Shown here: piece after piece, positions 2,078 to 29,492 of the stretch
Numbering within the stretch: position 1 is the first letter of the stretch
Layout: each line of letters begins with the position of its first letter
NCBI GenBank assembly: GCA_965235115.1
Contig: OZ249439.1
Location: 8,556,001-8,620,000 of the forward strand
Direction: 5' to 3'
Origin: Laetmonice hystrix
Lineage: Eukaryota
DNA length: 64,000 nucleotides
Made by a program: the position numbers and the translations under genes
Notes under the pieces: model-generated
What the model saw: the letters and a program-made list of their open reading frames with translations, nothing else
The model's database searches: none
Told to the model about the DNA's origin: nothing

Positions 2078-2171
2078 CTAGTGATAGCGGTCTTGAAATT
2101 CGTGATGCCACTTGTTAAAGTCGATGTTAAAAACGATAAGACACCCAGTCGCTAGTCCGGCCATCAGATAT
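2078..2171 (-). CDS. NBEA: BEACH gene last coding exon
   Basis: CTCTCCCAG|A TAT CTG...; [33 protein letters not shown] at 2078-2080 followed by a second TAG. Confidence 0.95.
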
Positions 2172-2579
2172 CTGGGAGAGAAAAAAAAATAAAATAAAAA
2201 TTAGTTGTGGATCAACTAGAAAACTCCACTCATCCGTGTATTTAAGGTATCCCGTACATTACAACGAACCACACTCAGAGAAACAAAAAGAAGGCCCTGA
2301 TCCATTAAGACGATTTCCCTTGCGACGGCCAGGCGATTTTTTTATTTCATGATGGAATTTCACTCTGTAACTTTTCCTGGCTGGCCTTCCCTGTTTCTGG
2401 AAATGGGTTCCATCCTTTAATCTTAAAAATCCCAGTAAAATAACAGGGTGATGCCAAAATCGCATTGACATCACAAGGACAATCGCCTCAGTAGATCAGG
2501 GCCTTAACTGTCTCAACTTTTTTCTTTCCAAACTAGAGTGGTAAAATAACGAAGGATTTCTTGATTACGTGTGACCTAC

Positions 2580-2731
2580 TTTTGATCGTGTGAAAGGGCG
2601 AGCGAGCGGACGCTCGAGTCACAGGTAGGGTAGGTGTAGAGGACATTCAGGTCGTGTGTCCGCCAAACCTCGACGATACCGTTATCACCTCCCAACATGA
2701 CGTACTGCCCGTCACGTGACATAATCATACA
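2580..2731 (-). CDS. NBEA: WD40 exon
   Basis: TTTCAG|TGT...CAAAA|GTAGGT; [51 protein letters not shown]; not in ORF track (<60 aa). Confidence 0.94.
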
Positions 2732-2998
2732 CTGAAATCACACCAGAGGGCGCACAAGTCAGCACATGGAATACAACCACCGGATCCCAATCTCAAATTG
2801 GTGGGTCAAAACGGTGTTGAAAAAAAATTGTTGAAACAATGTATTCTTTAAAATATATATTAACACAAGCTGGTTAAAACTTACATTATTAAAGCATAAG
2901 GCACTCTTATCGACCGGGTCCAAATCTTGGCTATTATAACACCATAATACATTCCCTATGCCCGCACTTCATACCGACCGAAGTCTGAGCACACCCAC

Positions 2999-3195
2999 CT
3001 GGACATTGTCGTTGTGAGCGACGTGTCGCAGTAGTTTGCCGTTGATGCCAAACGAACAGAGGGCACCCTTGTCGTAGTTCACGATGATGTAGCCCTCTCG
3101 TGTCATTGTCAGGAACTTCGGCGAGCGGTACACATCTGGTGGTTCTAACGACCGCAAGAGGTCGCCAGTGTTCGAGTGGATCAGGCACGGTCCAT
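2999..3195 (-). CDS. NBEA: WD40 exon
   Basis: TCTTCCAG|AT...CAG|GTGGGT; DGPCLIHSNTGDLLRSLEPPDVYRSPKFLTMTREGYIIVNYDKGALCSFGINGKLLRHVAHNDNVQ. Confidence 0.94.
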
Positions 3196-3364
3196 CTGGA
3201 AGATAGCAAATTGCTGGTGTCAAATTGCTTACAATCTGAGAACGTTCATTTCTTTACCCAGTGGTGTCTGGTGGGAAGATTCTAAAGATGCTTTCGTCAT
3301 TTGCTGTATTTTGCCAGTTGTTACTGTGCCGTCCGTTAGTCAAAGAATGGTTTTATTAGATCCC

Positions 3365-3950
3365 CTGACCACTATAGCAAGTCTTACGTTGTGAGCCACT
3401 GACCACTATAGCAAGTCTTACCTTGTGAGCCACTGACCACTATAGCAAGTCTTACCTTGTGAGCCACTGACCACTATAGCAAGTCTTACCTTGTGAGCCA
3501 CTGACCACTATAGCAAGTCTTACCTTGTGAGCCACTGACCACTATAGCAAGTCTTACCTTGTGAGCCACTGACCACTATAGCAAGTCTTACCTTGTGAGC
3601 CACTGACCACTATAGCAAGCCTTACCTTGTGAGCCACTGACCACTATAGCAAGTCTTACCTTGTGAGCCACTGACCACTATAGCAAGTCTTACCTTGTGA
3701 GCCACTGACCACTATAGCAAGTCTTACCTTGTGAGCCACTGACCACTATAGCAAGTCTTACCTTGTGAGCCACTGACCACTATAGCAAGTCTTACCTTGT
3801 GAGCCACTGACCACTATAGCAAGTCTTACCTTGTGAGCCACTGACCACTATAGCAAGTCTTACCTTGTGAGCCACTGACCACTATAGCAAGTCTTACCTT
3901 GTGAGCCACTGACCACTATAGCAAGTCTTACCTTGTGAGCCACTGACCAC
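3365..3950. repeat. 34-bp minisatellite, ~17 copies, spanning exon 3' end + 5' splice site
   Basis: Unit CTTGTGAGCCACTGACCACTATAGCAAGTCTTAC; 19 nt exon + 15 nt intron on minus strand. Confidence 0.97.
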
Positions 3951-4036
3951 GATACCAAGCTCTGCCGACACTACTACACACGTCACTTCAGATTGATGCC
4001 CGGTCAATGTTGCTTTAGGGGTAGGATCTTCTATAC
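3932..4036 (-). CDS. NBEA: WD40 exon (donor amplified 17x downstream)
   Basis: TTTTCAG|GT...CAAG|GTAAGA; [35 protein letters not shown]. Confidence 0.93.
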
Positions 4037-4395
4037 CTGAAAACGTTTGGGCACACTTGTACGACATGTTACACTCGACTTGACTATGACTGGACTGTGT
4101 GATTGTTTAACACGGTAAAAGACGTGTTTGGGAATAACTTATGCTTAACTAAAAAATTATGCATTCTGTTATTATTACGATAGAAATCACTTTTTAAGTT
4201 CTTATAAAAAAACACACACAAAAACACCAAGGTGACACTTCTGTAAACCCCTAAATTAACGACCTTTTATAGTTTCGCAATTCTTTCACAATTTTGTACC
4301 TAAAGCTTCACGTTTTTCCCGTTCTACCTATTTCACAAAACTTTCATACACTGCCAAAACCGCGAATCAAGGGAACCAAACAGTGTTGTCCTTAC

Positions 4396-4563
4396 TTCCA
4401 TTGTCTCCTAGAATACTCTGCTGTTTGGCATTCCAGTGCCAGACCATGACTGTACAGTCCTTGGAGCCGGTGACGACGTAACAGTCCTGGTTAATGTTAC
4501 ACTCAGACCGTCCTATACACGTCACCACGTCAAAGTGACCATACACCACCTGGCATACCTTGG
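4396..4563 (-). CDS. NBEA: WD40 exon (proximal-acceptor form; 9 more in-frame acceptors up to 5346)
   Basis: TTTACAG|CC...GGAA|GTAAGG; [56 protein letters not shown]. Confidence 0.92.
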
Positions 4564-5368
4564 CTGTAAACAAGTAAAAACGGTTACACTCAGACCGTCC
4601 TATACATGTCACCACGTCAAAGTGACCATACACCACCTGGCATACCTTGGCTGTAAACAAGTAAAAACGGTTACACTCAGACCGTCCTATACACGTCACC
4701 ACGTCAAAGTGACCATACACCACCTGGCATACCTTGGCTGTAAACAAGTAAAAACGGTTACACTCAGACCGTCCTATACACGTCACCACGTCAAAGTGAC
4801 CATACACCACCTGGCATACCTTGGCTGTAAACAAGTAAAAACGGTTACACTCAGACCGTCCTATACACGTCACCACGTCAAAGTGACCATACACCACCTG
4901 GCATACCTTGGCTGTAAACAAGTAAAAACGGTTACACTCAGACCGTCCTATACACGTCACCACGTCAAAGTGACCATACACCACCTGGCATACCTTGGCT
5001 GTAAACAAGTAAAAACGGTTACACTCAGACCGTCCTATACACGTCACCACGTCAAAGTGACCATACACCACCTGGCATACCTTGGCTGTAAACAAGTAAA
5101 AACGGTTACACTCAGACCGTCCTATACACGTCACCACGTCAAAGTGACCATACACCACCTGGCATACCTTGGCTGTAAACAAGTAAAAACGGTTACACTC
5201 AGACCGTCCTATACACGTCACCACGTCAAAGTGACCATACACCACCTGGCATACCTTGGCTGTAAACAAGTAAAAACGGTTACACTCAGACCGTCCTATA
5301 CACGTCACCACGTCAAAGTGACCATACACCACCTGGCATACCTTGGCTGTAAACAAGTAAAAACGGTT
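4496..5368. repeat. 87-bp tandem array, 10 copies, spanning 3' splice site + 68 nt of exon
   Basis: Period 87 (4496, 4583 ... ), near-identical copies, 29-aa repeat in ORF 4367..5371. Confidence 0.97.
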
Positions 5369-5653
5369 CAAATACCGGATTCTGTAACGGGGGACGGGGG
5401 TGGGAAGGGTAAGAGTACACAGGAGGGGGGGGGGCTGCTGTCTGAGACCTTTCTTTACAGGGTCTGAGGTAATTTCCCCCTAAAAGTTGAATTTTAGCAA
5501 GTCAACTGGATCCGGTCCTAATGATATACATGTATCACAAAAAAAGCTCACAAACTTCTTGATATTAATATGTTATTGTCCATCTGTAGTTTTGTTATAT
5601 CGTTTGTGATTGGTTAGGCTGTACGTAAAGGTAATGTGCTCGGAATGCCCTAC

Positions 5654-5809
5654 CAGACTCAGACGAGAAGAGCCGGAAACTCTTATCCCAGAATCCCGCA
5701 GCGAGAATGAACCGATTGTCGGCAGTCGTGATGAACGATGAGTGCGCCACCTTGAGGCGCTGGTCGAAGTTATTACCCAGGGACCGTCGGTGGAGTCCGT
5801 GACCAAACA
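5654..5809 (-). CDS. NBEA: WD40 exon
   Basis: GTTGCAG|TG...TCTG|GTAGGG; VFGHGLHRRSLGNNFDQRLKVAHSSFITTADNRFILAAGFWDKSFRLFSSES. Confidence 0.93.
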
Positions 5810-8082
5810 CTGCAACATGATTGGACGATGTAATCAACCAATCAGCAAACGTCACCGCTATCTCTCCCCTTCCGTGTCTAACGTTGGGAGAATTGTTCCT
5901 CCAAGGTCTAACATATATTTATATAATTTACATGTATATGACAATAGAGAGAAATATATAGGGCTTAATTCTGGATCAATTACTCATAAATAACTTTAGT
6001 AACCATCTTTTCTTATAAATGAAATGAAGATAAGATATAAAGAAGTCTCAATAGAAGCATGCACAAAATATAATTATAAGATAAGAATTTTAATGACAGT
6101 GATAAGAAATCAATAAAATGTCCCAATGGGCTCGCCTCTTCTGTTCTACTTTGTTCCAGATATGAATAATATGTTGATCGTTGGAAACAAACTTTCTGAA
6201 AGCTTCCTTGTGCCCCACATATAAATAAGTCCAGAGCCTCCCTATCGACCTGTAACGGGACCATCGGGTTGGGTAGGCCGGGCAGCTCCCGGGAATAGTT
6301 CGGGAAAACCGGTAATGCTAGCGGGAAAACACACCACCAATTTCTGGGGATGGATGGAGTGTTCATCCATCAAGTGTTCCGACGCTAGCCCAGGAAAAGT
6401 TTGGATTCGACTGCCGATGTAACTGGATTCAGATGGTATCAAAATCTAGGCAGCATGATGCATTGCGTTAGTGTTATTTCAGCAGTACATTTATCCGCGG
6501 TCAGTGGTTTTGATACCAATCTGAACCCTTTTCTTACCTCGCAACATGCAATATAATCCATAGACGGGAATTCTTAAAGTGCATTAAAGTCAGTGCCTCT
6601 GCTAGAGAGCGTGGTAGGATGTTGTCACCTGAATGACTGATATAACGTGCTGTGAGTGCAGTAGCAAAGTCAACGACACCATGAACAATGCTGATGGCAG
6701 TTGTGCAGTCTGGGTTGGACAAGACGGCCAAGCGTCAGAGGAACCGTTATGGTAATTGGATGACTTCCTAGCCAAGGCCCTTTCATCAGCCAATCATATT
6801 CGTGTACACAAACTCACACGGGACGTCATGGTGTAGACAACATGTGTTGTGTCGTAGTGTAGACGGTGTATTAATCAATAAACATTCCAGGATGGCATTC
6901 AGTCTACTCACTAATGGACGAGAGCGACAAGTCCGTCAGAGATTCAACACTCGACAGGATTATAAAGGGGTTAAACTGATGTGCAAAAAATGTGCGTAAA
7001 ACCGAGTGTATGAGGGAGAGGTGGTATAAAACTGGGAAGGTATGGACTACAGTGTTCTATAGGTATGTCTCTAAAATACACAAAGTACACAATGGAAACG
7101 GTCGCAACTGTCACAAGTCAAGATTCAACCAGAGATGGAGCATCGGAAATAGAATAAAAGATACTCTACTGGTCTAAACCAAGCCATGAACGAGTCTAGC
7201 AGGAGGGAGGTACCAACGATACTAAACATTATGCCAACGCGACATGAGACGCACGATGCTACTGGACGCAACTATCAACCAATGAAAACCCATGTAACAT
7301 AACGCTGCGTCACTCGACGCACACGTCGGGAGTCACGCATGCGCAAACCAATACCTGTCGACTCATCTTTGGGGGGAATGAAAACGAGGTCGAGGATGAA
7401 AAAGAAAAGAGAACAAATGCCATTCAATACAAAACATAAAGTACGTTTGTTGTATTGTGTTGTGACCAGTAAACGTGCAGAGATACTGTATTTTCATGAA
7501 TGCAAGGACGTTACAAACTGGTACAACCCAGTCACAGTTACATTACGGAAAGAAAACACGCCACACGACCACGACAAGGACAAGTTCCTCTTCCACATTT
7601 ACTACATGTTTTCAAACGTTTTGTTCTCCTGACAAGTATGGGACTGTGTTTCTGTGTGTTATCAAACGACCTGGGTTTTTCCTTATCGCCCCATGCACAA
7701 TTAGTTCGTGCCTGACATCGTGTCGATGGAAAACTCCAACTTTTCCCATCGAAACTCGACTTGATATGCTGAACTGCTGGACAGACACAATAATTCCTAA
7801 GCAGAACACAAGGTGGCGCTTCCATCTTATTCTTAAAATACAAATTAAATGCAAACACAACGCAGCTCAGGCTCTAATAAAGCTATTTAATGAATATAAT
7901 CATTGACAAAAATATACTTTTTAGGACATGGTTGCTTGCAATTAGTGATCACTTTGTTGACATACACTTCTGGTTTATAATATAAAATATCTCACCAAGA
8001 ATTGGCAGTTTCTCAGAAATGTTTGTCATTTTTCCCCAGACAACAAATACTCAGGTTCTTTGGTGGTACGGTGCCCACTTAC

Positions 8083-8154
8083 CGAGTAGCTGGTCCATGG
8101 AGAGAGGAAGCTGTGGCTGAGAGTCCGTCTTCTCCGTGTAACTTGGGGATGGTG
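8083..8154 (-). CDS. NBEA: BEACH-WD40 linker exon
   Basis: TTCTCCAG|CA...CTCG|GTAAGT; APSPSYTEKTDSQPQLPLSMDQLL; phase 1-1, aligns positionally with vertebrate ...HLPIEMDPLI... Confidence 0.85.
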
Positions 8155-8180
8155 CTGGAGAATTGGCTGTTGGTAACAAC

Positions 8181-8730
8181 AATCACGTGTCACATCCCAG
8201 CCAATCAACCACATTCACACATCAACCAATAATCACGTGTCACATCCCAGCCAATCAACCGCATTCATACATCAACCAATAATCACGTGTCACATCCCAA
8301 CCAATCAACCACATTCATACATCAACCAATAATCACGTGTCACATCCCAGCCAATCAACCGCATTCACACATCAACCAGTAATCACGTGTCACATCCTAG
8401 CCAATCAACCACATTCACACATCAACCAATAATCACGTGTCACATCCCAGCCAATCAACCGCATTCACACATCAACCAATAATCACGTGTCACATCCTAG
8501 CCAATCAACCACATTCACACATCAACCAAAAATCACGTGTCACATCCCAGCCAATCAACCACATTCACACATCAACCAATAATCACGTGTCACATCCCAG
8601 CCAATCAACCACATTCACACATCAACCAATAATCACGTGTCACATCCTAGCCAATCAACCACATTCACACATCAACCAATAATCACGTGTCACATCCCAG
8701 CCAATCAACCACATTCATACATCAACCAAT
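8181..8730. repeat. 50-bp minisatellite, 11 copies
   Basis: Unit AATCACGTGTCACATCCCAGCCAATCAACCACATTCACACATCAACCAAT. Confidence 0.96.
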
Positions 8731-9072
8731 CACATCCCTGCTTCCACGTCGAAACGCCAGGAAACCGTGTCTCTTGTCAAAACGCCACATAGATACATAA
8801 ATACATTCACAGCATGTTCCTTCGCTAGTGCTTAAAGAGAGCTACTGCATGACAATTTACAAGTCTGCATTACAAGTAAAAAACTCATTCTAATTACAAA
8901 AGCAAACAGTTTGTGCCAGTTGAATGTATAATTATTGTAACTATCTAGAGAGCTGCTGCCAGGCGGTTCAAACAATGGAGAGATAGATCGCAGAAGTTGT
9001 GTGTTTTAGGAGTATGGTGTGCGCCAGACGAGGGTGGGGGTTAGGTGGGGGTGGGTGGGTGGGATGACGTAC

Positions 9073-9253
9073 CTTTGCCGGCGTTGTGGTTCCACTTATT
9101 GACGGCGAAGTTGTGATTACACGTGATTGTAATGACGGCCGGGGTGGGCACGGCTGGGTGGGTGTTTGCCGACAGGTGGGTGACCGGAGAGTTGGAGAGG
9201 AACTTCATGATCATACACACGTCATCAGGTACCGTCGAGAACATCATTGGAGA
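9073..9253 (-). CDS. NBEA: Linker/WD exon (acceptor amplified 10x upstream)
   Basis: TACTCAG|TCT...AAAG|GTACGT; SPMMFSTVPDDVCMIMKFLSNSPVTHLSANTHPAVPTPAVITITCNHNFAVNKWNHNAGK. Confidence 0.93.
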
Positions 9254-10003
9254 CTGAGTATGTGAAAACATAAACCGACCATCAGATACCTCAGTCTGTA
9301 TCAAGTTCTTAGGTTCTCTGAGATCGGAGACTGAGTACGTGAAACATAAACCGACCATCAGATACCTCAGTCTGTATCAAGTTATTAGGTTCTCTGAGAT
9401 CGGAGACTGAGTACGTGAAAACATAAACCGACCATCAGATACCTCAGTCTGTATCAAGTTCTTAGGTTCTCTGAGATCGGAGACTGAGTATGTGAAAACA
9501 TAAACCGACCATCAGATACCTCAGTCTGTATCAAGTTATTAGGTTCTCGGAGATCGGAGACTGAGTACGTGAAAACATAAACCGACCATCAGATACCTCA
9601 GTCTGTATCAAGTTATTAGGTTCTCTGAGATCGGAGACTGAGTACGTGAAAACATAAACCGACCATCAGATACCTCAGTCTCTATCAAGTTATTAGGTTC
9701 TCTGAGATCGGAGACTGAGTACGTGAAAACATAAACCGACCATCAGATACCTCAGTCTCTATCAAGTTATTAGGTTCTCTGAGATCGGAGACTGAGTACG
9801 TGAAAACATAAACCGACCATCAGATACCTCAGTCTGTATCAAGTTCTTAGGTTCTCTGAGATCGAAAACTGAGTACGTGAAAACATAAACCGACCATCAG
9901 ATACCTCAGTCTGTATTGGTTCTCTGAGATCGGAGACTGAGTACGTGAAAACATAAACCGACTATCAGATACCTCAGTCTGTATCAAGTTCTTAGGTTCT
10001 CTG
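9249..10003. repeat. 77-bp tandem array, ~10 copies, spanning 3' splice site + 5 nt of exon
   Basis: Acceptor CT(plus) at 9254, 9331, 9407, 9484, 9561, 9638, 9715, 9792, 9869, 9937. Confidence 0.96.
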
Positions 10004-10209
10004 ACATACCGCGACCAGAACAGCTCGCAATCACAAACATTTTTTCTCCTTTCAACGACCTGTATTTCGTTTTCCTCATTACGATTTTCCACACTATGAA
10101 TCTGAGTTTTATTTAATTGACCTCAATCAGAACTCAATACATATATTGACATCTCCTTGACTTGTGAATGACTGGAGTTCAATTTTAAGTGAATACTGAA
10201 CTAACTTAC

Positions 10210-10299
10210 GATATGCATGACTGAGTTGCGCGGAGGGTGTGGTTCCGTGAGGAGTTGGGCAGGCGTTTGACCAAAACTACGTATCTGATTCTCTAACGC
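10210..10299 (-). CDS. NBEA: BEACH C-terminal exon
   Basis: TTTTGCAG|GCG...ATC|GTAAGT; [30 protein letters not shown]. Confidence 0.95.
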
Positions 10300-10311
10300 C
10301 TGCAAAACATC

Positions 10312-10486
10312 ATCAACATATTCTTCTTCAAATATCAACATGTTCTTCTTCAAATATCAACATGTTCTTCTTCAATTATCAACATGTTCTTCAATTATCA
10401 ACATGTTCTTCTTTAAATATCAACATGTTCTTCTTCAAATATCAACATGTTCTTCTTCAAATATCAACATGTTCTTCTTCAATTAT
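10312..10486. repeat. ~22-bp minisatellite, ~8 copies
   Basis: Unit ATCAACATGTTCTTCTTCAAAT. Confidence 0.92.
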
Positions 10487-10599
10487 AATTATAGTCGCTT
10501 ACCCTTGTACTTTGGACAATAAAATATTCAACATAATACGGATTTATAGTTAGGGTGGCACAGTGTCAGAGGATTGGGGAATTGTCTCTACCCGCGTCA

Positions 10600-10884
<285 letters not shown>

Positions 10885-10890
10885 TTAACG

Positions 10891-11686
10891 CTGGTCCAAA
10901 CACACATTTCGTAACACCTCCCTGACATATACCATCCACAGCTGACCGTTACACTTACTGGTCCAAACACACACTTCGTAACACCTCCCTGACATATATA
11001 TACCATCCCACAGCTGACTGATACACTTACTGGTCCAAACACACCGTAACACCTCCCTGACATATACCATCCCACAGCTGACCGTTACACTTACTGGCCC
11101 AAACACACACTCATACCTGCCAACATTTGGTCGACGGAATCCGGATTCATCCCAAAGTGACTTTTGATACTCTCTCTATGGGCCCCTTTCTTTTATCCAT
11201 CTCTCTCTATTCCTCTCCATTACTGACAGAAAGCACAACTCTGATTTACTAAACTTAGTGTAGAGATCTAGTTATATGGCAGGGACCATAAACGATCTTT
11301 TTGCCAGTGAAACTCTGCCATAAGCGAGAGATTTAACATGTATTTGGAGGGAATCTATACTTATTCTGTAAATTTCATGATTCCGTAATATTTAGAGAGT
11401 AATCCGGAATGCGGAATACCTCATTCAAATGCGGAAAGATTCCGCAGAATGCGGAAGGGTTGGCAGGTATGCACACTTCGTAATACCTCCCTGACATATA
11501 CCATCCCACAGCTGACCGTTACACTTACTGGTCCAAACACACACTTCGTAACACTTCCCTGACATATACCATCCCACAGCTGACCGTTACACTTACTGGC
11601 TCAAACACACACTTCGTAACACCTCCCTGACATATACCATCCCACAGCTGACCGTTACATTTACTGGTCCAAACACACACTTCGTA
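10891..11686. repeat. ~68-bp minisatellite, ~7 copies, interrupted by a MITE
   Basis: Unit GGTCCAAACACACACTTCGTAACACCTCCCTGACATATACCATCCCACAGCTGACCGTTACACTTACT. Confidence 0.94.
11112..11471. mobile_element. Non-autonomous DNA transposon (MITE), 360 bp
   Basis: Perfect 13-bp TIRs CATACCTGCCAAC / GTTGGCAGGTATG; CACACT duplicated on both flanks relative to the uninterrupted repeat unit; subterminal TGCGGAA/TCCGGA motifs. Confidence 0.88.
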
Positions 11687-11823
11687 AATTCTACAATATT
11701 TGTGAACTCTTTTATAACCTCCTTTTACTAAACACCAAATAGTCCCCCCAAATCCCCAGTCGTGGTGGCCCAGAGTGTGGACGTTTCAGACAATTCAGAA
11801 AGTTATTAGGATATAAGACTGAC

Positions 11824-11976
11824 CATTCTGTTCATCCGTACGAAGTCCTCCGCACTGCCGGCCCATGGCGGTAGTTCCACGTTACCGATGTCTACCATCT
11901 CCTCCGTCTTACCCAGATTGTAGCTATTGTTGTTGGTGAACATGTCGGGCAGATAGTAAAACTCTGGGACTAACTC
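11824..11976 (-). CDS. NBEA: BEACH exon (acceptor duplicated at 12056)
   Basis: ATTACAG|GAG...ATG|GTCAGT; ELVPEFYYLPDMFTNNNSYNLGKTEEMVDIGNVELPPWAGSAEDFVRMNRM. Confidence 0.95.
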
Positions 11977-12080
11977 CTGTAATAAACCATACTCGACTCG
12001 TAGCTATTGTTGTTGGTGAACATGTCGGGCAGGTAGTAAAACTCAGGGACTAACTCCTGTAATAAACCATACTCGACTCG
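11921..12080. repeat. 80-bp direct duplication spanning 3' splice site + 56 nt of exon
   Basis: Two copies, 2 differences. Confidence 0.95.
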
Positions 12081-12269
12081 TAAACTAGAACCTTTATGTA
12101 ACAGTGATGTTATAACTTAGGTAGATAGAGGACTCCATCACGGCCCCAGGGTTACGGCAGTATAAGAGTTTTCAGATTATACATTGCTAACCCTGCTGGT
12201 ACTTGTGTAAACCCGACCCCAGCCCAGTAAACCTAGGTTTACGTTCTCACCCCGGTGTGTGTCACTAAC

Positions 12270-12389
12270 CTTGACGTCCGAGGTATCTCTCTGACAGTTT
12301 TTCCACGCTGCTGCCACTGAGTGGAAGGTTCGGTTAGCGTGATCAAACTTTCCACCCTGTAGGTGGAGGAAGAATGACGTGAAGGGTTC
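12270..12389 (-). CDS. NBEA: BEACH exon
   Basis: GTTCCAG|GAA...AAG|GTTAGT; [40 protein letters not shown]. Confidence 0.96.
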
Positions 12390-12694
12390 CTGGAACAATC
12401 ACAAGTCAATCGTAACCATTGACTGGGGAGAGCGAGAGGGACGCAACAAATTCAACTTTTCCTGTACTACTCATACACTGCCTGCTTCCAGCGACCAATT
12501 CCATATACTACTTGGCAACGACTGACCGCATGGGCAGACCTACCTGACAATGATGCGACTTTTTAAAAACAAAAAAAAAACCCTCCCTTGGAAATTGCTG
12601 ATATCGATCAGTTCTTTCCCTACTTGAAGTTGTGCGTTTGATATTTCAGATCCTGTTTGAGGGTGTGAATTTACTGGTTTCCATGGTAACATAC

Positions 12695-12835
12695 CAGTCG
12701 GATGAGCCAGTTGAGAGTGAAGGCGGCTGTCGAGTAGTGAGTACCGTAATGGAATGGTGGGATCTGGTCGTGCTCCCACTGCTGGTAACGTTCTTCAAAG
12801 AACGCCTTCCGAGTCGGGTTGAGGGCTCCGATCGG
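12695..12835 (-). CDS. NBEA: BEACH exon
   Basis: TTGCCAG|CCG...CTG|GTATGT; [47 protein letters not shown]. Confidence 0.96.
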
Positions 12836-13162
12836 CTGGCAACATAACGAACGCCGGTCAACAACCACAACAACCATAACCACAACCGCAACAACAATAT
12901 CACCATGATTCTTGCAAACGATAATGATAAAATATCAATGGTAATAACATCCCATACAATCCGATACCAATCTTTCTATTATGTATTTTTGCCCACGTTA
13001 TTACACAAAGTCTCTGTACGGTGAAACCCCTGGAGAACTGCATTATGAACTTGTAATCGGAAAACTAACCTGAAAAATCTTGAAATCTTTTTTGAAAGGG
13101 AGTTGGTGGTAATATGAGAAAACATGACAAAACCACTCAACTACATCATAAAATTAAAACTA

Positions 13163-13521
<359 letters not shown>

Positions 13522-13599
13522 CGGTACATCAATCAATTCATGTCTAGCCAAGAAAACCTCAGCGAGTGACACTCCTGGTCTGGCGGTGTTTAAATCAAT

Positions 13600-13613
13600 C
13601 CACTAGGTGGCGC
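13600..13613 (+). promoter_or_regulatory. CTCF-like motif
   Basis: CCACTAGGTGGCGC, full match to CCASYAGRKGGCRS. Confidence 0.55.
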
Positions 13614-13829
13614 TATGGGTTTGAACTGGGATCTGCGGTGTCGCCCCCTACCAGCATTTACATGGACTATCGTCTGCACAGTCCTGCTGTTCCGAACCAC
13701 ATACCCTGCCCGTTACTGCCTTATTTAGAAACACCCTGGAGAACAGGGGTCGGGGAGAATAGGGATCATGTAACACCGCTCCCCCTATCTCTCTACCCCC
13801 CCCCCCCCGGCCGCCCAAACTGTCCGTAC

Positions 13830-13932
13830 CTGGTCTGAGGCAGTCCATACTTGACCCCGACCCCGACACGGGGCAGGGCGCTGTTGACCTTCTTGGCCGT
13901 GGCCTGGTCCGGGAAGGCAAACATGACGGCAG
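13830..13932 (-). CDS. NBEA: PH-domain exon
   Basis: TCTTCCAG|CT...CCAG|GTACGG; [35 protein letters not shown]. Confidence 0.95.
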
Positions 13933-15027
13933 CTGGAAGAAATCATCCATGACATGGTTACTCTAAAAACTCTATTTCATAGAAAGTGAGAAAGTGCTAC
14001 TACTAATTTCGACGCAGCATCAGTCACGTTTAGAAAGAGAAATCCTTTCCAGGGATTTATTTTTATTTCCCTTTTATTTCCTTTAACAGAAAATGTTTCG
14101 ACGGCTCTGTAGGTCCTAGGGCTATAAGGGTTCCACAATCTTGATAGCTAAAATGGTGTTTTATTATGCTATAAATGTACACACACTACGTACATACTGA
14201 AACATAACGATTAAATCGGTGTTCGCCCAACATGGCATGATGATATAAGTTGCATGTTCATGACACCGCACATTGTCTCGATGTCATGATAACCACTTCT
14301 CACACCAGAGGGCACCACAGTACGACACTGTGCGACATAAACCGGCGACCAACCATCGCCAAGGTCACAGAGGTCGAATCCTCTTGGCAGACGAGGTAAT
14401 ACTAGTACATTGGGTCGTAACTCTGCATGCCAAGAGTTGTTTGAAGATAACTTCCTGTCAGCAAGTGGCGGGAAGGATCCCAAATGTTCACTTGACACGT
14501 TACCATGTTGGGTCGCCTCCAAGAGTCACGATAAGGATCTCAGTAGTACGATACTAGCTTGTCGTCTGGGTGCTCTCTAATAGGGAGGTGTGACAAAGGT
14601 TAAACATGTCGAGAAAGTCTGCCATCCTTGGTTACTATGGGAACCCTGACTAGAACGTTGTGTGACACGGACATTTGGAACGCAAGTCTTCCCCAAACCG
14701 AGGCCAGCTGACATCCAGCCAGTCCTTGGGAAGCCTGAACCATAAAGTTTAACGAGGGACATGGTTTGTCATCTCTTCTTGGAAACATCTCTGTAAAATG
14801 GCACTTTCAAAGAAATACTCCTGCAGGTCCACGTATTCTTATCTTATTTTCCTAATTATCCTAATTGCCCACAAACCTCGCCCAAGAGCATTCAAAGGTT
14901 AATGACATAGAAACAGGAAAATGTAATACACACATTATTCTATTGCCCCCTCTGATATTATACCATTTGAAGTGCTTCCACCCCCCCCCCCCCCCCTCCA
15001 CCCGCCGGTCTCAGGGACGTCACTTAC

Positions 15028-15145
15028 TCCGCGAAGCCATGAAGATCTCGATGGCCGTGTTCTGTAGAAGGTATCGTCGGGAGAAGATGGCGCGGATCTC
15101 GTTGAAATGCCATTTTCCGTGTAAATGATCGACGTAGGCCAACAC
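15028..15145 (-). CDS. NBEA: PH-domain exon (acceptor duplicated at 15241)
   Basis: GTTACAG|GTG...CGGA|GTAAGT; [39 protein letters not shown]. Confidence 0.95.
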
Positions 15146-15316
15146 CTGTAACACACGAACAGACAGATCCTGGTAAGGTCAGCAGAGGGACAATGAACAT
15201 TATGACATCACAAACAATGCATGATCGACGTAGGCCAACACCTGTAACACACGAACAGACAGATCCTGGTAAGGTCAGCAGAGGGACAATGAACATTATG
15301 ACATCACAAACAATGC
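15125..15316. repeat. 96-bp direct duplication spanning 3' splice site + 21 nt of exon
   Basis: Two identical copies starting 15125 and 15221. Confidence 0.95.
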
Positions 15317-17962
15317 ATTCTTTCGTTCCAAACGGACTCTATCGAGGGAACGCATAGAAAGTATTGGAACCCAGCTGGTGGCGCCTCCACGCGAGCACCT
15401 CGGTACTAACGCCACACAAAAACCCAGGCCTCCCGACATTTTATTTTTTCACCAAGTATTGTACACGGTTTGTAATAGTCAGTAATTATCATGAAAACAT
15501 AAACCCTACTTGACTGATCAAAAAAGATCTACTCGGTGATTTCTTTGACTAGCGGCCATACATTAAACCTAAAAACGTTGAAAGAGCTCCAGTCCAACCA
15601 GATACGATTGACAACTTAAATTTCTCCTGACATATTATATAGACAACCCTCCAGCTTTACACGTGGCTCTCCCCGGCAGCCAGGAGCCATTCTATGATCT
15701 CAGACAGATTAGCCAATCCTACCAACCACCTAAATCTGCTCCATTATATCTACTCTATATAGAAACCCCTCCCCAGACGAGACCACAGAGTGAGAGGTTT
15801 ACAGGGACCGGCGAGTTGTATGTAACGATCAGCGGAGATCCATCACCAGGTCTGATGACAGTGATGGAGAGAGTTGGATCTCTCATAGTTTAACCTCAAA
15901 CACGACCATCAATCACCATAGATATGACAGATCACCTGTCAGTCCGCCGTCCAGGGACCAGTACCGTCCGCTGCCACCAGAGGGAGCCCCACCAGGGAGA
16001 CGCCGTCTTATTTTTACGCACGGAAACGTCATTTTTTAATGCCCTATTAAATTGTGATTCTATGGCCCTGAGAGTTATGCATTCACGGTCCCAGGATCAG
16101 TTTATGGCATGTATAAAGGGGTAAAAATATTCACCCTTTGGGAAGTTCTGACCAAAGCGGATGTTGTGCTGGCGTGCATCCTCATGGTGTGGCATAACCA
16201 ATATTCATCAGCTAATTGGTTGAATTATCTGCCGGTAATATATACCCGTAGATAGAATTACCACTCTCTGTACAGATTCGTCACCTTCCTAACAACCCGT
16301 GGCATACTCTGCCTCTTCCAGTCGGCCGTCCAATATTTTGACACGACCAGTAACCGACCCGCGTGTAAGAACGCTGTCAAAAAACACGTGCGCGCCACAT
16401 TTCGCGCCCATTTTCCAAGGAGCAGACGACCCAAGAGTCTAACCCATTGAGCGAGCAAGGCGGCACGAGCGCGTTTGTTTATTTGCGCGGACTCTCTTGT
16501 TGCGCGCAGACCAGCAGTGCTATCCGTCAACCAAGTCGTTACCCAGGTTACCAACACAAACAGTGCCCACACTGATGGCATACACATTTTGTAGCCACAA
16601 CACAACGTTCAACCGAGGGGCGATCATGAGCCGAGACACCGCTACATCCTGTACGACCCTATAGGAACGCTATAGAAAAATACGAGCCTTCTCGCCACAC
16701 CCTATAAAATGGGACTCGACATTTACAACCCAATGTTTTAACAGCTTGAGTGCGGTATTTTCAAATGTAAAAGCAATCGTGACCAAAAAAAAGAAGAAAA
16801 AAATAGAAAACATTCCTAATTTGACTGTAGAGTCATACTAGCCCCCTTTTTGCTGTTGTCGGTCGTGGTGAAAGGTTTCCATTCCCACGGGCGAACGCTC
16901 TAGCCGGAAGTCGGAGTGCGGAGAGAGATGTATAGCGTCTGGTATACTTGTGGTATGTTATCATCATAACGAAGTTAAATCGTTATCTCTAGAGCCCGGA
17001 GACGGGTGTTCCTACCTCAGCGTGGCTATGATTTCTCAAGGATATATTACATGGGAGTATACGTTACCCTGGGTCGTATCGCTCTAACAAAAACAAGCCA
17101 GTAAAAACAGAACAGTTGCAAGTTTTGTTGTTATTGAATCACTCAATTGTCAGTGCCGACAGGTCTTTGTAAATGGAAACGACGTCTGCATTTACCTTTA
17201 TAATCATAGTCATATTGAGCGAGGATAAAAATGAACTATGTCTGCCCCACCTGGACACTAGACAGGTGCGGCTTTATATCCCAGACGATAACAGTTCAGG
17301 CTTTTGGATCCTTATCTGGGCTGGATGATTACATCATGAGGACTGTGGTTGGCATTGTGTTGTCTTCACCGGACAATGAGACAACGATGCAATTACATCT
17401 AGTTTTCGTCCACTGAGAGTTCTATCAAAGGAGCCCCGGAAACCGGTGCTACAGTATCCAGCCTTCCTTGCTAACAGGCAATGCATCACTGTGGTATCAG
17501 TAATTACCTCTCTCGTTAAAAAAAAACAAAGAAAAAAGCTTTTCAACCCAGCCACCAAAATCTGCTGAGCTTCCAAATCCTATAGTTATCTATATCTGTG
17601 ACTAGCGCTATTGTTAGACGGATTTAGTTGTGGGTCCTGTAATCAAGCGATGGACTGGCTGGCCGATTACAGCGCCATCTGGACGCGGTGCGGGTTTGAC
17701 CCAAACCGAGCGAGACCTCCGTCCCCCTAGTGGCGACCGGTAGGCCCAATTAGAGCCCACTTACACCGGTCCACTTTACTGTGATTAGCTTCAGTTAACT
17801 AAACACCGATCCTGCTTCAAACACACGCCCAGACACCGCGCCTTGTTCCTAGACCCTCTTATTAAACAACGACTACAACGACACGTTTACACATCAAACC
17901 GTCAAATACGGAAAAATCACTATCATTTAAACAGATCGAGGCAATCAAGGTTTTAACTGGAG

Positions 17963-21380: not shown

Positions 21381-24300
21381 TCTCACCGTCAGGGCTGGGC
21401 TGACATGGACTTGTATTGTCCCCTTTAATCCTCTATCAGTCCCACTATACGAGCCGATTATCCGTGGAGATGACCGGTGGGGGCAGGGATACAAAGGAGA
21501 CAAACACCGACTGAGCTGAGCGATCAGTGGCCGAGATTACCTGATTGAGATAGTTATCGGTCGAGGCTGAGAACCGTGCCTGACACCGTATAGCAGGGAC
21601 ACATAGGATAGTTTGTTTGATCTGCTATCCGATGTTGAACAAATTACAGCGACCCGCCGAGTGTGAGGTGAGACTGTGGAGAGGTGGGTTAACCCTGGGT
21701 GGATGTTTAATTGGTGGTGTCGAGTTGTGGGTTAGTGGTGGAGAGAGATGTCCATGGGAACGACAGGGACACCCAGGAGAATCAATCACCTTGAGGGTCA
21801 ACTAATGGTACCGACAGGACAAACTAGAGGACAGATCCTCCTGCCATAACGTCCTACAATCACTTCCAGAAAGGTGGGACACGGAAAGGCGGGACGTCAC
21901 AAGTTGCGCTAGGAAAATTCCCTAAATAAAGTGACCTGAAATAACTCTGCTTTCAAACCCTGTACAAATTTGGAGGTAGGATGAAGCGATCTGAAATTAT
22001 TTCCCCTTTCAAAGCCAGTATTACTTGGGGTCAGGCTACACGACCGCTGAGGAGGTCCAAGTCCATATTTTCTCAGACCATGATGTGTAGGACAGTAACC
22101 GATACACGCACTTAAAGTCCGAGCTTTTCAATTAGTAGTAGCCGTGGACGATATATGTTTTCCTGACGAGGGACCGGCCCTGGCCTGGCCAGGTCTCCGG
22201 TGATATAGTATGGGCAGTCGTGACACAGGACCCTGACCGTCCGAGCTCAGCCCTCTAATCAACCAGTCAACACCTGCTGACCTGACCACGTGGTGACCCG
22301 ACCACGTGGTGACCACACCACGTGCTCGCCGCTAACCGGACTAACCGCTGCCACCCCGAGCTCGGGAAATTAGAGGCACCGTGCTCTCGGACGTCAAGGG
22401 GTGGGGTGGAGACAGGGGCGAGGGGTGGGGTGGAGACAGGAGCGAGGGGTGGACGCTACAACCACCGGCTGACGGCGCCTATACAGGCGTCAGTTTGTTC
22501 TCGTCGCACGGTTAAACCGGGCGGCACCTCGTGGGAAGACGGCAAGCAGGGCGTGTTTCCTGAGTACATTCACAGTGGCATTCATCGACTCTATACGATC
22601 TCCCGGGAATTCATAAATCATGGAGCCATGTATACTTTGTGAATCAATGCTGACTCTATAATGATATCTGAGGGCGAATATCCTATGTGACCGCCATATG
22701 ATTACAACTAAACACATCATCAGTGTACATGTATGTATATAAACGATCCCAGCATGGAATCCTCCCCTCATTATGTACACTCATGATCCATGCGTTACAG
22801 GAATGTACTAGAAGTACACATTTATATACCCAAACAGACGCCCACCGGAGTAGGTCCATACGACAGCGTTACGCCTGCTACCTCTATATATACCTGTCAT
22901 TTAATTTGGCATATGACATGTTGGCGAATCTGATTCCATTTCCGAATCCATGGATGGTGGGTGAATTAATTGTGCTTGTCGGTCGTCTGTATACATTGTG
23001 TACCATCACAACCCGTGCGGTATGCACAACGTCACACGTCCTGCCAGTTCTATACGACTGGTCCGATTACTTAGGTAAACAAACATGCATGTTATACATC
23101 CCTCCATGTACTTGGAGACGCTGACGTTTGGCCAGTCGGAGCGGAAAATCACCACCCAACCCTATTATAAACATTTCTATATGTAAACACGCAGACTACA
23201 CGGCGACTTTACGACTCGCTCAAATATGTTTACATAATTATGTATGCTTTGGTTGAGAATGAAGTGTAATGTAGTGAAATCCATTTCTAGTAAACGGAGA
23301 GTAATTCTCTTTTCATAAGGTACAACTGAGCTTGATGGGATTATGATCGTAGTTCTATATTATGGTTCCCCTTTTCACATATAACACATGTGGTTAAGGA
23401 TAAACAAAGCGAACCGCTACAGTCAATGTCAACTTTATTTAATTATTTTATACATTAATTTGTCCATCTTCCTCTATTCCGCTCTATATATTCAAGCCAC
23501 AATTACAACTTTTCCATTGCATATTCTCAATAGAGAAACCTCTATTATATCACACATGCAACTATAATATGGAAAGAGGAAGCACCATAATGATCTGAAT
23601 ATATTTTTGGGGGGTATGTTTTAATGGCCTCATTTATACTAGGGGGTATCAGAAGTGATTATAGCTCCACTTTAATAATCTCTGATGTCTGTATGATAGC
23701 GACATCTAGTGACGAGTCGCATTACTCGCAATGTCAGCGGTTCCAATTCATGGCCGTGGATTGGGTATCACTTTCAGTCTAAGACCATGTGGTCTAAATA
23801 ATGGCTCCACCTCAACGCCATCTTGGATGCCATATCCGTGTACGGTTCACATCACTTCAAAATATCCATTCACAACGTTACTATGGGCAACGGGTTACTG
23901 TGGAAACGGTTTATATACCCCATGGTGCATGGCGACAAGATTGTTTTCTCGGTCCCAGGAAATCTCTTCATAAAATCTCTTCCTTTGCTTTATCTTAAAA
24001 AGTCTAGGCCTACATTTAAATTTAAGAGCATATAGACTTGATTGTATAGATAAAATCACATTTTTAACAAAGCTGAGAAGCTGACCGGACCTTTAGTTTC
24101 TGCTAGGAGGGTGTTTCATATCCACCGACTGTCCTCAACCTATTTCCCGTCGCCAGGATACAGCACAATGTCGACGACCACAGCATGTTTTCATCGACTG
24201 CCTGTTGCCATGCAGCACGGAACATCCCACTAGGGGCGCTGAAGGTCTATAGCATCCAGAATATGTAAGCAGCATAAAACAAAAGATATGTGCATGCCCA

Positions 24301-25527
24301 TGACATGTACATATGCAGCGAGTGGGCGGGGCTTAACAAGCTAACTGACCTCAGAGCCCTCCCAGCCCCGCCTACCTCAGGTCTCACCACGATAAATCAT
24401 ATCGAGTAAGGACTGTATTCAGAAGAAAGCCCTCCAGCCACCCGGGGCTCACACACATTTCTAACGTTCTTATCAAACTACGTGTTCCCGCTCTGATCCT
24501 AAAGACGGTTGATCTTTTGAAGGTGATCGGTTTGGCGGCTTAAATGGTGAAGTTAGGAGCCACCCGAGCCGTGAAACGACCAGCCATGGTACCCGCCCTT
24601 ACCCCGTCATTTCAAGCCGTGACAAAGGGCAATTATCACGGATTTACCTGTCTGACGGGCGGCCTCACAGCGAGGGCCGGGCCGGCTTTGTGTCAGCCCA
24701 GCCCGGGTAAAGCCGTCTATAGCTCCCCTGCCTCAGGGCCCTGTCCGGGGTGTCATTAGAAGGAGTACCATGTCATTTGCCCCCTGGGTCACCAGCTGAG
24801 AGAGTCTGTCGCCTGACTTCCATACCTGCGGCCGGGGTTCATACGTCTCGACATAAAAAAGAGAGCATCCTTACTTGTGCAGCCTCCCTGCCGATTACTT
24901 GGCTTTTATTGTTTACCAGCACAATGTGGTCTGTAGTTAGCTGACTTCACACACCTCCGGTCGTGTCGTAATATTGTACAAGGCTGTGATTAGACGGGAG
25001 GTGATGACACCGCTCTCAGATCCCCCCGGCCCCTGGCCCCACACCCGCCCGGCAGGATGTACGCCCGGCCCGTACTGCGCCTTCTCCCGGTCTGTATACA
25101 CAACAAAGGCTCGCTCACGTAACACCCGGCTCATGACACTCAATCAACGGTTGTCTACTTGTTACAGCTCACTGAGCCCGTCATTACAATCCACTCGGCA
25201 GGCCGAGAATGCTCCTTACATAACGTGATGATGGGTCAAACTCACACACTCTCTCTCTGACGACAGATGCTTTCACTTTTTAATGTATTCTCAGACACAA
25301 CACAGGCTTCACACTCGTAAGCGTCGTCATAATCGACTGACTGATAAGGCCAGCGTGTTTGATCTTATCTCATCACTATACATGGCCGTTTACAAAGCAG
25401 CGAATAGCTTTGAGGCAACATCCCTCGCTGACACAACCCCAATCCTATAGTGTTATTCATGAGCGCCCCCTACAGGAGTTCTCACGAAACACACGACCGA
25501 GCCCATTCCCCCAGGCTCTACGGGAGG

Positions 25528-26185
25528 CAGGCTGGCCAACCATTCCCTGTCAGGCTGGCCAACCATTCCCTGTCAGGCTGGCCAACCATTCCCTGTCAGG
25601 CTGGTCAACCATTCCCTGCCAGGCTGGTCAACCATTCCCTGCCAGGCTGGCCAACCATTCCCTGCCAGGCTAGCCAACCGTTCCCTGTCAGGCTGGCCAA
25701 CCATTCCCTGCCAGGCTGGCCAACCATTCCCTGTCAGGCTGACCAACCATTCCCTGTCAGGCTGGCCAAGCGTTCACTCACAAGCTAGGCAACCATTCCC
25801 TGTCAGGCTGGACAACCATTCCCTGTCAGGCTGGCCAACCATTCCCTGTCAGTCTGACCAACCATTCCCTGTCAGTCTGGCCAAGCATTCACTGACAGGC
25901 TAGCCAGCCATTCCCTGCTAGGCTGGCCAACCATTCCCTGTCATGCTGGCCAACCATTCCCTGCCAGGCTGGCCAACCATTCCCTGTCAGGCTGGCCAAC
26001 CATTCCCTGCCAGGCTGGCCAACTGTTCAGACAGGCTAGCCAACCATTCCCTGTCAGGCTGGGCAACCATTCCCTGTCAGGCTGGGCAACCATTCCCTGT
26101 CAGGCTAGCCAACCATTCCCTGTCAGGTTGGCCAACCATTCCCTGTCAGGCTGGCCAACCATTCCCTGTCAGGTTGGCCAACCGT
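25528..26185. repeat. 23-bp minisatellite, ~28 copies
   Basis: Unit CAGGCTGGCCAACCATTCCCTGT. Confidence 0.95.
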
Positions 26186-28765
26186 TCAAGGCCGGCGTGG
26201 ACATCGTACTTTCCCTATACTACTGACTACCATGGCCGCCACTCATTCAATACACGCCAAGTCCATCCTTTGAGTGACTCGTCTCTTTCCGCCATATGCA
26301 GCCGGCTGACAACCCAACACATGGCAATAAAAGTAACCGATCTACACTTAGTACACTACCGTCACCACTTAACGTTCTCTGGTCGAGGATTATATGTATA
26401 GATTTACAAATATCGCCTCCACGACAAAGGCTCGGGGCGTGTCCCCAAACCGACCCCTGTAGAGCGGGGCCTTGTCTCGGGCGTACCCCCGCCGTGCCGC
26501 AGACACCATATATACAGACGGGTGCTTTCACTGACCCCCTCCGGACCCCACAGACGCTACCCCTGGCGTTCCGGGAGCTACGACCCGCCATGTTGTAGCG
26601 GCACCGAGTTGACAACCTCCCGCCTCGCCAGTGAAAGGAATCTGTTGACGAGCGGAGGATACAATCGACCGGCCACTCAGGTCTAACACCGGCGTATCAA
26701 AGACCCAAGTGTTTCTGGGGATACGATACGGACTCTAGGGTGTCACCAACAACAACATCTCAACCCAGGATGTCCATATTAACCTCACGTATATACGGCT
26801 GGCTACCTGTTCCCACCAACCGGGCCGCGTCTGGGGCGGTACCATGACAACGGCGAGGTGTACTGATTTGGTTAACCATTGTATGTTGGTGCTCTATACT
26901 TTTATACTCTAAAGTAAATCCGATTTAACCCTACATATTATAATATAGGCCTATATAATCTATTTAATTCACTCCATACTTTACTATAAAACTCATTTTT
27001 TTGAGCAGGACCATTTGCCATACTGTTTTCTGCCAAAAGACCTCGCTTAAAGTGCCCCCCGTATGATGTAAGCCTATTGTACCTCACTCTGAAAGACAAT
27101 ATTTCACAATTTGTCAGGATCTAGACAAGGGGGCGGGGCCCGTCGTGTAAACGGATAGCCCCAATCCTGGCTGGTTGACGGGTCCGGATTTCAGAGGGGA
27201 AAGGTGCGACCTGCCCCGGGCCTGGGTGCAGGGAGGGCCGGGGGCTATGCCACGCCTGGGCCGGGGTGCGGGGAGGGCCCGCCGGCTATGACACGCCCGG
27301 ACCGGGGCAGGCGGGCCCGAGTAGCGGCTGATCTCAAAGAGCTCCCTGTCAAATCCCCGGTGGTCGGAGCGACAGGGCCCCGACTGGTAAAACGATACTT
27401 TTTCATTAGAGCCTTTGTAGATTCATTGGGGCGGTCGAGTGCACGTCACTTTCAAGGGCATTATAGATTAATAGACTCTCTAACTAACGAAGAAATACTC
27501 GGTTCTTGGCCGCTGATATTAAAACATGATTATCCAATGTTATACAGTATACCATATAGGCACCTCTGGTAGACGCTTCATGTCCTATATTTCTATAATT
27601 GTGGGGAAGGTTTTTATTTGGGGTAATATTTTTTTATTTGTCATTGTGTATGGTCAGGAAGATTTACATGCCTCCATCTCCAATGTCAGACTAAAGACTA
27701 GTTATCTTAGAAGACGTCAGAGTGACAAGATAATGAAGAACAAGTACTCGTCCCTGTCCGTTTAACCAATCAGAGTCTGTGATGTAGGCTGCCATGCCGA
27801 CCGTCGTCGTTAAGGATGACAGTCAGATACGGTGCCCCTTCACCTCTGCAACGATCCACTCGGCAGCTCTCGTAAAAACGAGGTAAGAAAACGAGACCGT
27901 GGCCGGATGTGTGTAATTGGTCGGATCTGGAGTAATTAGACGTCTGCCGCCAGAGGGAGTGACGGTCGGGGGTGGAGGTGACAATCTGGGATGGGAGTGG
28001 TTCGGACCATACCGTATACCTACACGAGGCCCGCTATCGGGGTGGGGGGGGCAGTTACTCGCTACGGTTCGTCTCCATCAAGATACCGCTAAATTAGGTT
28101 TAATGATAACAGACCGACACGTGTATCTAAAAGTTGTTACCTAAAACATAATCTACATGTTTATGATATATATGGACACGGCACAAATCTTCCATGCGTA
28201 GACCCTTAGATTTAAACATGGATTTTACTCGCTGCATGTATGAGCTTATATTCCACTTAATGAAACAATACAGACGTGAACAGGAGGTCTACCGCTTGGA
28301 GAACTAAAATTTATCATTCATAACTTAGGACACGATACTGGGCGGGAGTACGAGTATTAGCCTATACACTTGTCAAGTGAAAGTAGGCCTATATATCTGC
28401 CCCCCACCCCCCACACACACACACCTGGAGCCGCAGGTGACTGACTGACGTAGCGCCCCTGTACCCACCCTGACCACACCCACAGCCAGCCGTACTCGGT
28501 GGCCGTCGCCGGGGGGACATGAACCTGGCCTGTATGGCCTGTATAACACACACCGAGCTATAGGCAATGTAAGGCGGTGTTGGTTGAGGCGTATACAGAC
28601 CGATGTTATCAGCGGTATACGGCCGGCTGTCCGGTTACCGCGCACCGACCCGGCCCGGCCGTCTGACGCCACTGGTCCCGGGTACAAAGCCACCCGCATG
28701 CTGCCCTCCACGGCTGTCCGGTCAACCTCACACTGCCGCCGTTATCTGAGCTGGCCATCTCCCCG

Positions 28766-29390
28766 GCGGCCGGCCAGCGGGCACCCGTCCGCCTACCGGC
28801 CAGCGGGCACCCGTCCGGCGGCCGGCCAGCGGTCACCCTGGTCCGTCCGGCTACCGGCCAGCGGGCACCCTGGTCCGTCCGGCTACCGGCCATGCAGCGG
28901 GAACCCTGGTCTATCCGGCTACCGGCCAGCGGGCACCCTGATCCGTCCGGCTACCGGCCAGCGGGCACCCTGGTCCGTCCGGCTACCGGCCAGCGGGCAC
29001 CCTGGTCCGTCCGGCTACCGGCCAGCGGGCACCCCGATCCGTCCGGCTACCGGCCAGCGGGCACCCCGATCCGTCCGGCTACCGGCCAGCGGGCACCCCG
29101 ATCCGTCCGACTGCCGGCCAGCGAGCACCCTGGTCCGTCTGGCTACCGGCCAGCGGGCACCCTGGTCCGTCCGGCTACCGGCCAGCGAGCACCCTGGTCC
29201 GTCCGGCTACCGGCCAGCGGGCACCCGTCCGGCTACCGGCCAGCGAACACCCTGGTCCGTCCGGCTACCGGCCAGCGGGCACCCTGGTTCGTCCGGCTAT
29301 ACCGGCCAGCGAACACCCTGGTCCGTCCGGCTACCGGCCAGCGGGCACCCTGGTCCGTCCGGCTACCGGCCAGTGGGCACCCTGGTCCGG
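28766..29390. repeat. 32-bp GC/CpG-rich minisatellite, ~19 copies
   Basis: Unit CCGGCCAGCGGGCACCCTGGTCCGTCCGGCTA. Confidence 0.95.
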
Positions 29391-29492
29391 CGGCTGAAAC
29401 ACTTCGCTATCCGTGTGTATACTCACGTCCTATACTCAACCCGGCACTCACCTGTCCATGCCCTCTCAGGACGGACTACATTCGGAGCTTAC

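Follow-up and report, generated by a model that had tools for sequence, protein, structure and literature searches.

An in-frame minisatellite spanning a splice acceptor in a neurobeachin/LRBA-like gene of Laetmonice hystrix

Minisatellites whose repeat unit straddles an exon-intron boundary, multiplying the splice site that lies within it, have been described in amphioxus, where they are termed mirages. In the Adh3, globin (BflGb6 and BflGb9), troponin C (TnC) and PGBD5 genes the splice sites are duplicated and the mRNA is left undisturbed (PMC3087553, PMC3902484); the Adh3 example is that of Canestro et al. 2002, in the form in which it is reported in PMC3087553 and PMC3902484. Both acceptor- and donor-side cases exist among these arrays, their units range from tens of base pairs to about 160 bp with up to 100% identity, several arrays may occur in one gene, and normal mRNA is produced from the authentic site. 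A comparable situation is found in intron 7 of the human F7 gene, which contains a 37-bp VNTR whose first unit spans the boundary, such that 5-9 identical donors are present; only the authentic first donor is used, and the pseudo-sites are functional (PMC1557585). Tandem duplication of a segment containing AG|GT has also been proposed as a route to intron gain, the Rogers model (PMC3265369, PMC2891723, PMC4974935; also PMC3087553, Figure 7), a link that has already been drawn for the amphioxus mirages.

We analysed a 64-kb stretch of the genome of Laetmonice hystrix (the window) in which an 87-bp acceptor-side array occupies an intron-exon junction of a neurobeachin/LRBA-like gene (Table 1), and the presence of this array in a gene of neurobeachin type is confirmed. 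It resembles the amphioxus mirages in the position of its unit across the boundary, in unit size and identity, in the occurrence of both acceptor- and donor-side arrays, and in the presence of several arrays in the same gene. Unlike them it resides in a host that is not a cephalochordate, the encoded protein sharing only 59% of its residues with the Branchiostoma orthologue against 69-74% with bivalve sequences, and its acceptor array keeps the reading frame exactly, with no stop; in addition, normal splicing at its junction is here something that we infer. The F7 repeat is a donor-side array, directly comparable to the 34-bp donor array that lies close by in the same L. hystrix gene (first donor used), whereas the 87-bp array is on the acceptor side, where scanning in the 5' to 3' direction does not obviously pick out the authentic site, which is the last. 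Like the segments considered in the Rogers model, each 87-bp unit contains CCAAG|GTATGC, and whole units would be excised precisely if the GT of one were spliced to the AAG|G of another farther along; unlike that model, no new intron is present, as the duplicated segment already includes a real acceptor and its copies merely lengthen an existing intron.

Table 1. Coordinates (window positions) of the gene segments, splice sites and junction-containing tandem arrays discussed in the text.
Feature	Position	Strand	Description
3' part of neurobeachin/LRBA-like gene	2078..15145	-	16 exons: end of PH-BEACH, BEACH domain, WD40 propeller; 752 aa to stop
Exon A	5654..5809	-	upstream of the array; donor at 5653 faces ten acceptors
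Exon B, authentic	4396..4563	-	168 nt, one WD40 repeat; acceptor is the last of the array; donor GTAAGG at 4395
Exon C	3932..4036	-	next WD40 exon; orthologue alignment, splice signals, RNA-like contig
87-bp x 10 array	4496..5368	-	unit comprises 19-22 nt from the end of intron A-B, with its polypyrimidine tract and CAG, and 65-68 nt from the start of exon B
Nine extra acceptor-like sites	first exon-like base 4650, 4737, ... 5346	-	CAG|CC copies
34-bp x 17.5 array	3365..3959	-	last 19 nt of exon C and first 15 nt of intron (CAAG|GTAAGA); ~17 donor copies; 99% matches
77-bp x 9.9 array	9249..10004	-	ends with acceptor and first 5 nt of the exon starting 9253; 94% matches
80-bp x 2 duplication	11920..12082	-	acceptor and 56 nt of the exon starting 11976; TAC microhomology
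96-bp x 2 exact duplication	15125..15318	-	75 nt of intron end and 21 nt of the exon starting 15145

Identification of the host gene was based on a 76-aa BEACH exon, which was searched against 1.84 billion representative sequences and matched neurobeachin/LRBA proteins, including Saccoglossus XP_006812132, Branchiostoma XP_078683647, an Ixodes sequence and P0010, a 1440-aa transcript-derived protein whose nearest named relative is from the bivalve Solemya. The gene model was obtained by tblastn of orthologues against the window and refined by splice signals. When the last acceptor of the array (4563) is taken as the start of exon B, all 16 exons are bounded by AG/GT and form a single open frame of 752 aa that ends in a stop. 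Over 751 columns, two of them gap columns, the product shows 74% identity to P0010; it is 69% and 66% identical to the Solemya and Ixodes proteins, respectively. Together with the 59% for Branchiostoma, these values set the genome apart from amphioxus and make a lophotrochozoan affinity probable. Pfam recognises a Beach domain on the exon at 13247-13474 (E 1.5e-27), and on exon B a single WD40 repeat (PF00400, positions 4-38 of 39, E 4e-5) together with NBCH_WD40 (E 2e-5). The order of domains, BEACH followed by C-terminal WD40, and the end-to-end alignment of the 752 residues with proteins named neurobeachin or LRBA place the gene in this family. A sequence search of the PDB returned generic WD40 proteins only and no neurobeachin propeller. 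A collection of transcript-derived proteins queried with residues 1000-1300 of P0010 gave no protein from L. hystrix itself, the best identity to the window being 72%, and a search for contigs encoding P0010 found none. A repeat of related appearance was seen in an insect: P0001 (KAG8331799.1, a hypothetical protein of Homalodisca vitripennis) is a 337-aa ORF with five tandem copies of the end of the BEACH exon, some with intron-like sequence between them. Either an array of mirage type or an error of assembly in the neurobeachin gene of this insect would account for it.

In the four orthologues aligned (the bivalve-like transcript product P0010, the tick Ixodes, the hemichordate Saccoglossus and the amphioxus Branchiostoma) the segment that is repeated in L. 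hystrix occurs once, and it continues without a break into the unique part of exon B, as SECN|INQDCY in our sequence and SECN|LNQDCY in P0010. Only with the last acceptor, 4563, is the conserved protein recovered.

The array has a period of 87 and 10.0 copies, with 99% matches and a score of 1739 (TRF). Each repeat unit consists of AACCGTTTTTACTTGTTTACAG followed by 65 nt of the start of the coding exon (minus strand). AAC occurs again directly after the last unit, and a 3-nt microhomology therefore bounds the duplicated segment; for the same reason the division of the unit between intron and exon may be written either as 19+68 or as 22+65. When the units are placed in register nine of the ten are identical, the remaining one (4586-4672) carrying a single G>A at 4607 that converts ACG to ACA, a synonymous change and a CpG transition. 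This amounts to one substitution in 870 nt, and because the copies are 99.9% identical the array must be very young, with no sign of selection discernible in its sequence. The length of the unit is a multiple of three (29 codons) and it is free of stops in the frame of exon B, the other two frames being closed by stops, so that a stop-to-stop frame of 370 codons (4370-5479) runs through the array. The GTATGC of the AG|GT motif, which is present in every unit, resembles a true donor of the same gene, GTATGT at 12694. A search of the whole assembly (627 Mb, 35 contigs) with the 87-bp unit detected no locus beyond the array in the window. Pfam assignments of the array ORF to SH3_ISE2 and PHAX were rejected as artefacts of summing over repeats, no single stretch being significant.

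Much of this anatomy had been set out in an earlier note on the same DNA, and stands: the ten copies of 87 bp, recovered by TRF with units in register; a composition of 19 nt of polypyrimidine tract and acceptor plus 68 nt of exon, for which AAC makes 22+65 an equally valid description; the multiple-of-three, stop-free unit, seen again on reading all three frames; the lone synonymous variant in copy 2 (the second when counted from the authentic exon); acceptors at 4563+87n up to 5346, all of them CAG|CC sites; and the AG|GT proto-splice site CCAAG|GTATGC in every unit. Its assignment of the unit to the GH segment of a WD40 repeat in a BEACH-WD40 gene agrees with the Pfam matches (WD40, NBCH_WD40 and Beach) and the orthologue alignment. 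One small correction concerns exon B, which ends at 4396, with the donor GT at 4395-4394.

An array of near-identical units might be a product of the assembler, a single true copy having been inflated to ten. We examined this with k=31 contigs and unitigs from three DNA runs (X1, X2 and X3) of one sample, which may be the assembly's own source and are therefore not fully independent of it. The contig of the unique exon ends at 4525, 30 nt inside the repeat from its 3' edge, and that of the upstream intron at 5339, 30 nt inside the repeat from its 5' edge; both breaks match the k=31 prediction for the edges of a tandem repeat. Between them the repeat collapses to a single unitig of 90 nt (X1, X2) or 117 nt (X3), the latter (5234-5350) including a junction between units, and the G/A variant acts as a bubble in the short-word contigs. 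The collapsed unitig has depths of 274, 477 and 154 in the three runs against flanks of about 52, 60 and 42, a ratio of roughly 4-8 that falls below 10 and in this respect is what an inflated array would give, but that may reflect fewer copies on the second haplotype or the limited precision of contig depth, which is not copy number. Collapse of the array to one copy, which the earlier note proposed to look for in raw reads, is not seen in these contigs, given the breaks at both edges, the junction unitig and the several-fold depth of the unit in all three runs. The assembly is moreover of chromosome scale (35 contigs for 627 Mb), and an 873-bp array should fit inside single long reads. We therefore regard an assembly artefact as extremely improbable. 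Local heterozygosity in the intron at 4273-4397 is about 4%, as 5 of 125 positions differ between two DNA unitigs of the same length, both with roughly half the depth of the flanks.

The array is composed of head-to-tail units of minisatellite size, and the unit encloses a true exon-intron junction of the gene in which it lies. It is very probable, in our estimation, that it is a young boundary-spanning mirage minisatellite, that its extra copies are functionally intron with the last acceptor the one expected to be used, and that its open frame is coincidental. Such an array would have begun when 87 bp across the junction of intron A-B with exon B were duplicated in tandem, probably via slippage at the 3-nt microhomology AAC, and would then have grown to about ten copies through further slippage or unequal exchange, in a genome in which arrays of this kind are very frequent. 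The nine extra copies would behave as intron, and the spliceosome would pair the donor of exon A with the last acceptor via exon definition, giving a normal, single-copy WD40 repeat. This origin, and the predominant use of the last acceptor, are presumed from the structure of the locus.

For more than 87 nt upstream the authentic acceptor and the eight internal decoys are identical in sequence, motif, pyrimidine tract and AG included, so that nothing on this side marks out the authentic site. Where two units meet (GAGTGT|AACCG), a branch-point-like UGUAAC motif is formed 21 nt upstream of 4563 and of each of the eight internal acceptors; the first copy of the array has UUUGAAC in its place. 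GTAAC-like motifs are also found at -27 and -31 in two other introns of the gene, and it is possible that motifs of the UGUAAC type act as branch points. Judged by its motifs, each unit would be a self-contained 3' splice-site module with a branch-point-like element of its own. Nothing local excludes the eight internal decoys, and transcripts that used upstream acceptors in frame would escape nonsense-mediated decay. In classical experiments with duplicated sites, as far as these are cited in PMC1557585, it was the proximal copy that was used. What distinguishes the authentic acceptor is that it alone has a complete exon behind it, with the donor GTAAGG 168 nt downstream, and we infer that exon definition selects it. 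The choice of the last acceptor would mirror the choice of the first donor in the neighbouring 34-bp array, as both yield the smallest exon.

Run searches found four runs, all from one sample and none registered as RNA, of which one (X4) behaves as cDNA. A 2880-nt contig from X4 joins 4396 to 4036 (GT..AG, minus strand), leaves exon C at 3932 and continues into exon D, of which it carries the first 30 nt (3195 onward). This contig passes directly from 3932 to 3195 and hence uses only the first, authentic donor of the 34-bp array. A second X4 contig covers 5697-5810 and is joined to an upstream exon that ends at 8083. The contigs stop at 4508 and 5697, and the interval 4509-5696, which includes the exon A-exon B junction, has no X4 contig. 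Because some mRNA must exist across this interval the gap is uninformative; it is technical and says nothing on acceptor choice. Its two ends (4508 = 4478+30; 5697 = 5727-30) are where k=31 bubbles at third-codon CpG positions would place them, and are not effects of the array. The breaks thus lie 30 nt from the CpG sites 4478 and 5727, as if the RNA sample were variant at these positions, while the DNA unitig 4368-4525, which carries the same sample code, looks homozygous; a different individual or a technical effect may be responsible.

A variation on the mirage interpretation allows for slight use of some among the nine upstream acceptors, producing a minor, non-adaptive ladder of in-frame transcripts with 29n additional codons, or transcripts that are subsequently repaired when CCAAG|GTATGC is spliced to the CCAAG|G of a unit further downstream. 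The internal acceptors are identical in sequence as modules (UGUAAC at -21, T-rich tract and CAG), the open frame would spare their products from nonsense-mediated decay, GTATGC is similar to the donor at 12694, and the RNA-like contigs do not span the exon A-exon B junction. No transcript of either kind was observed. In mRNA the join GAGTGTAAC|ATTAACC represents the authentic continuation of exon B, and GAGTGTAAC|CGTTTTT would appear only through use of an upstream acceptor or retention of the intron. The authentic site is the only one used in the neighbouring donor array, and the same holds for F7 (PMC1557585) and for the mirages that have been published (PMC3087553, PMC3902484); we consider leaky use, with or without repair, to be unlikely. 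The prospect that the nine decoys are used to a measurable extent, so that the open frame gives rise to stable neurobeachin transcripts graded in length by 87 nt, is likewise slim.

The earlier note had gone further and proposed ten isoforms with a WD40 insert of variable length. In its strongest form this would make the array a functional device whose ten acceptors yield neurobeachin isoforms differing in the number of partial WD40 blades, and the unit does have a length divisible by three, is open in the coding frame and contains the GH segment and first strand of a WD40 repeat. We find no support for this proposal, as nothing shows that longer proteins are made from the nine extra acceptors. 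The segment is single copy in all orthologues examined, and the 99.9% identity of the units implies no history of selection, their lone difference being a CpG transition. Each unit contributes 22-23 residues of a repeat of about 40, together with seven intron-derived residues (NRFYLFT), and would be unable to form a blade; a Pfam WD40 repeat is recognised at the last copy of the array only. An open frame is expected by our estimate about one time in four (1/3 for length multiplied by about 0.7 for the seven intron-derived codons), and that of the 87-bp array looks like chance, since only two of the five junction-containing units in this gene (87 and 96 bp) are multiples of three and the 96-bp unit has a stop in the coding frame. 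The 87-bp unit is the only open one; three of its four sister arrays are out of frame. Splicing at the neighbouring 34-bp donor array takes place only at the authentic site in the one RNA-like data set, and the described precedents keep normal splicing (PMC3087553, PMC3902484, PMC1557585). A device of this kind is accordingly very hard to credit.

The mirage interpretation accommodates the wider setting of the array, which is only one of several in the gene. Five of the nine tandem arrays in the gene contain a splice junction (units of 96, 80, 77, 87 and 34 bp). The 34-bp unit, whose length is not divisible by three, is closed by stops in every frame, and the 77-bp array, with its lower proportion of matches, is older than the 87-bp array. 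Microhomology of 2-3 nt (AAC, TAC, AT) is present at the ends of the arrays, which fits duplication of a slippage type. When units were placed at random in the de-amplified gene, 1.8-2.0 junction-spanning arrays were expected against the five observed (P ~0.015-0.026); omission of the 77-bp array, which includes only 5 nt of exon, leaves four observed (P ~0.07-0.11). Coming from a single gene chosen post hoc, this enrichment is a hint, and it is a possibility that splice junctions are favoured birthplaces of minisatellites in the L. hystrix genome. The region, or the genome, is exceptionally rich in minisatellites: the window contains 43 distinct tandem arrays that make up 21.7% of its length, most of them with units of 20-112 bp and identities of 90-100%. 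Elsewhere in the window there is a GC-rich block (24000-32000, 52-57% GC) with a 30-bp x 25 array at 30937-31900; no minus-strand frame of this array is closed by a stop, and the three would read as proline-rich repeats of PTNRPSLNSY type over 276-294 codons.

Splice-junction minisatellites are thus a repeat class that has already been described, as mirages, and what is new here is the host, which lies outside the cephalochordates. Taken alone, the 87-bp array is an ordinary, if tidy, example of this class. For annotation of the gene the array should be treated as intron and not as a 370-codon 'exon'. Ten identical in-frame acceptors that are not subject to nonsense-mediated decay provide a natural substrate for studying both the choice of 3' splice site and the initial step of intron gain by duplication; if the decoys were used to a measurable extent, the locus would complement the human F7 model from the acceptor side, as a natural system in which to study selection among identical 3' splice sites. 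The array is a further indication that mirages are not restricted to amphioxus and are present wherever minisatellites exist in great number.
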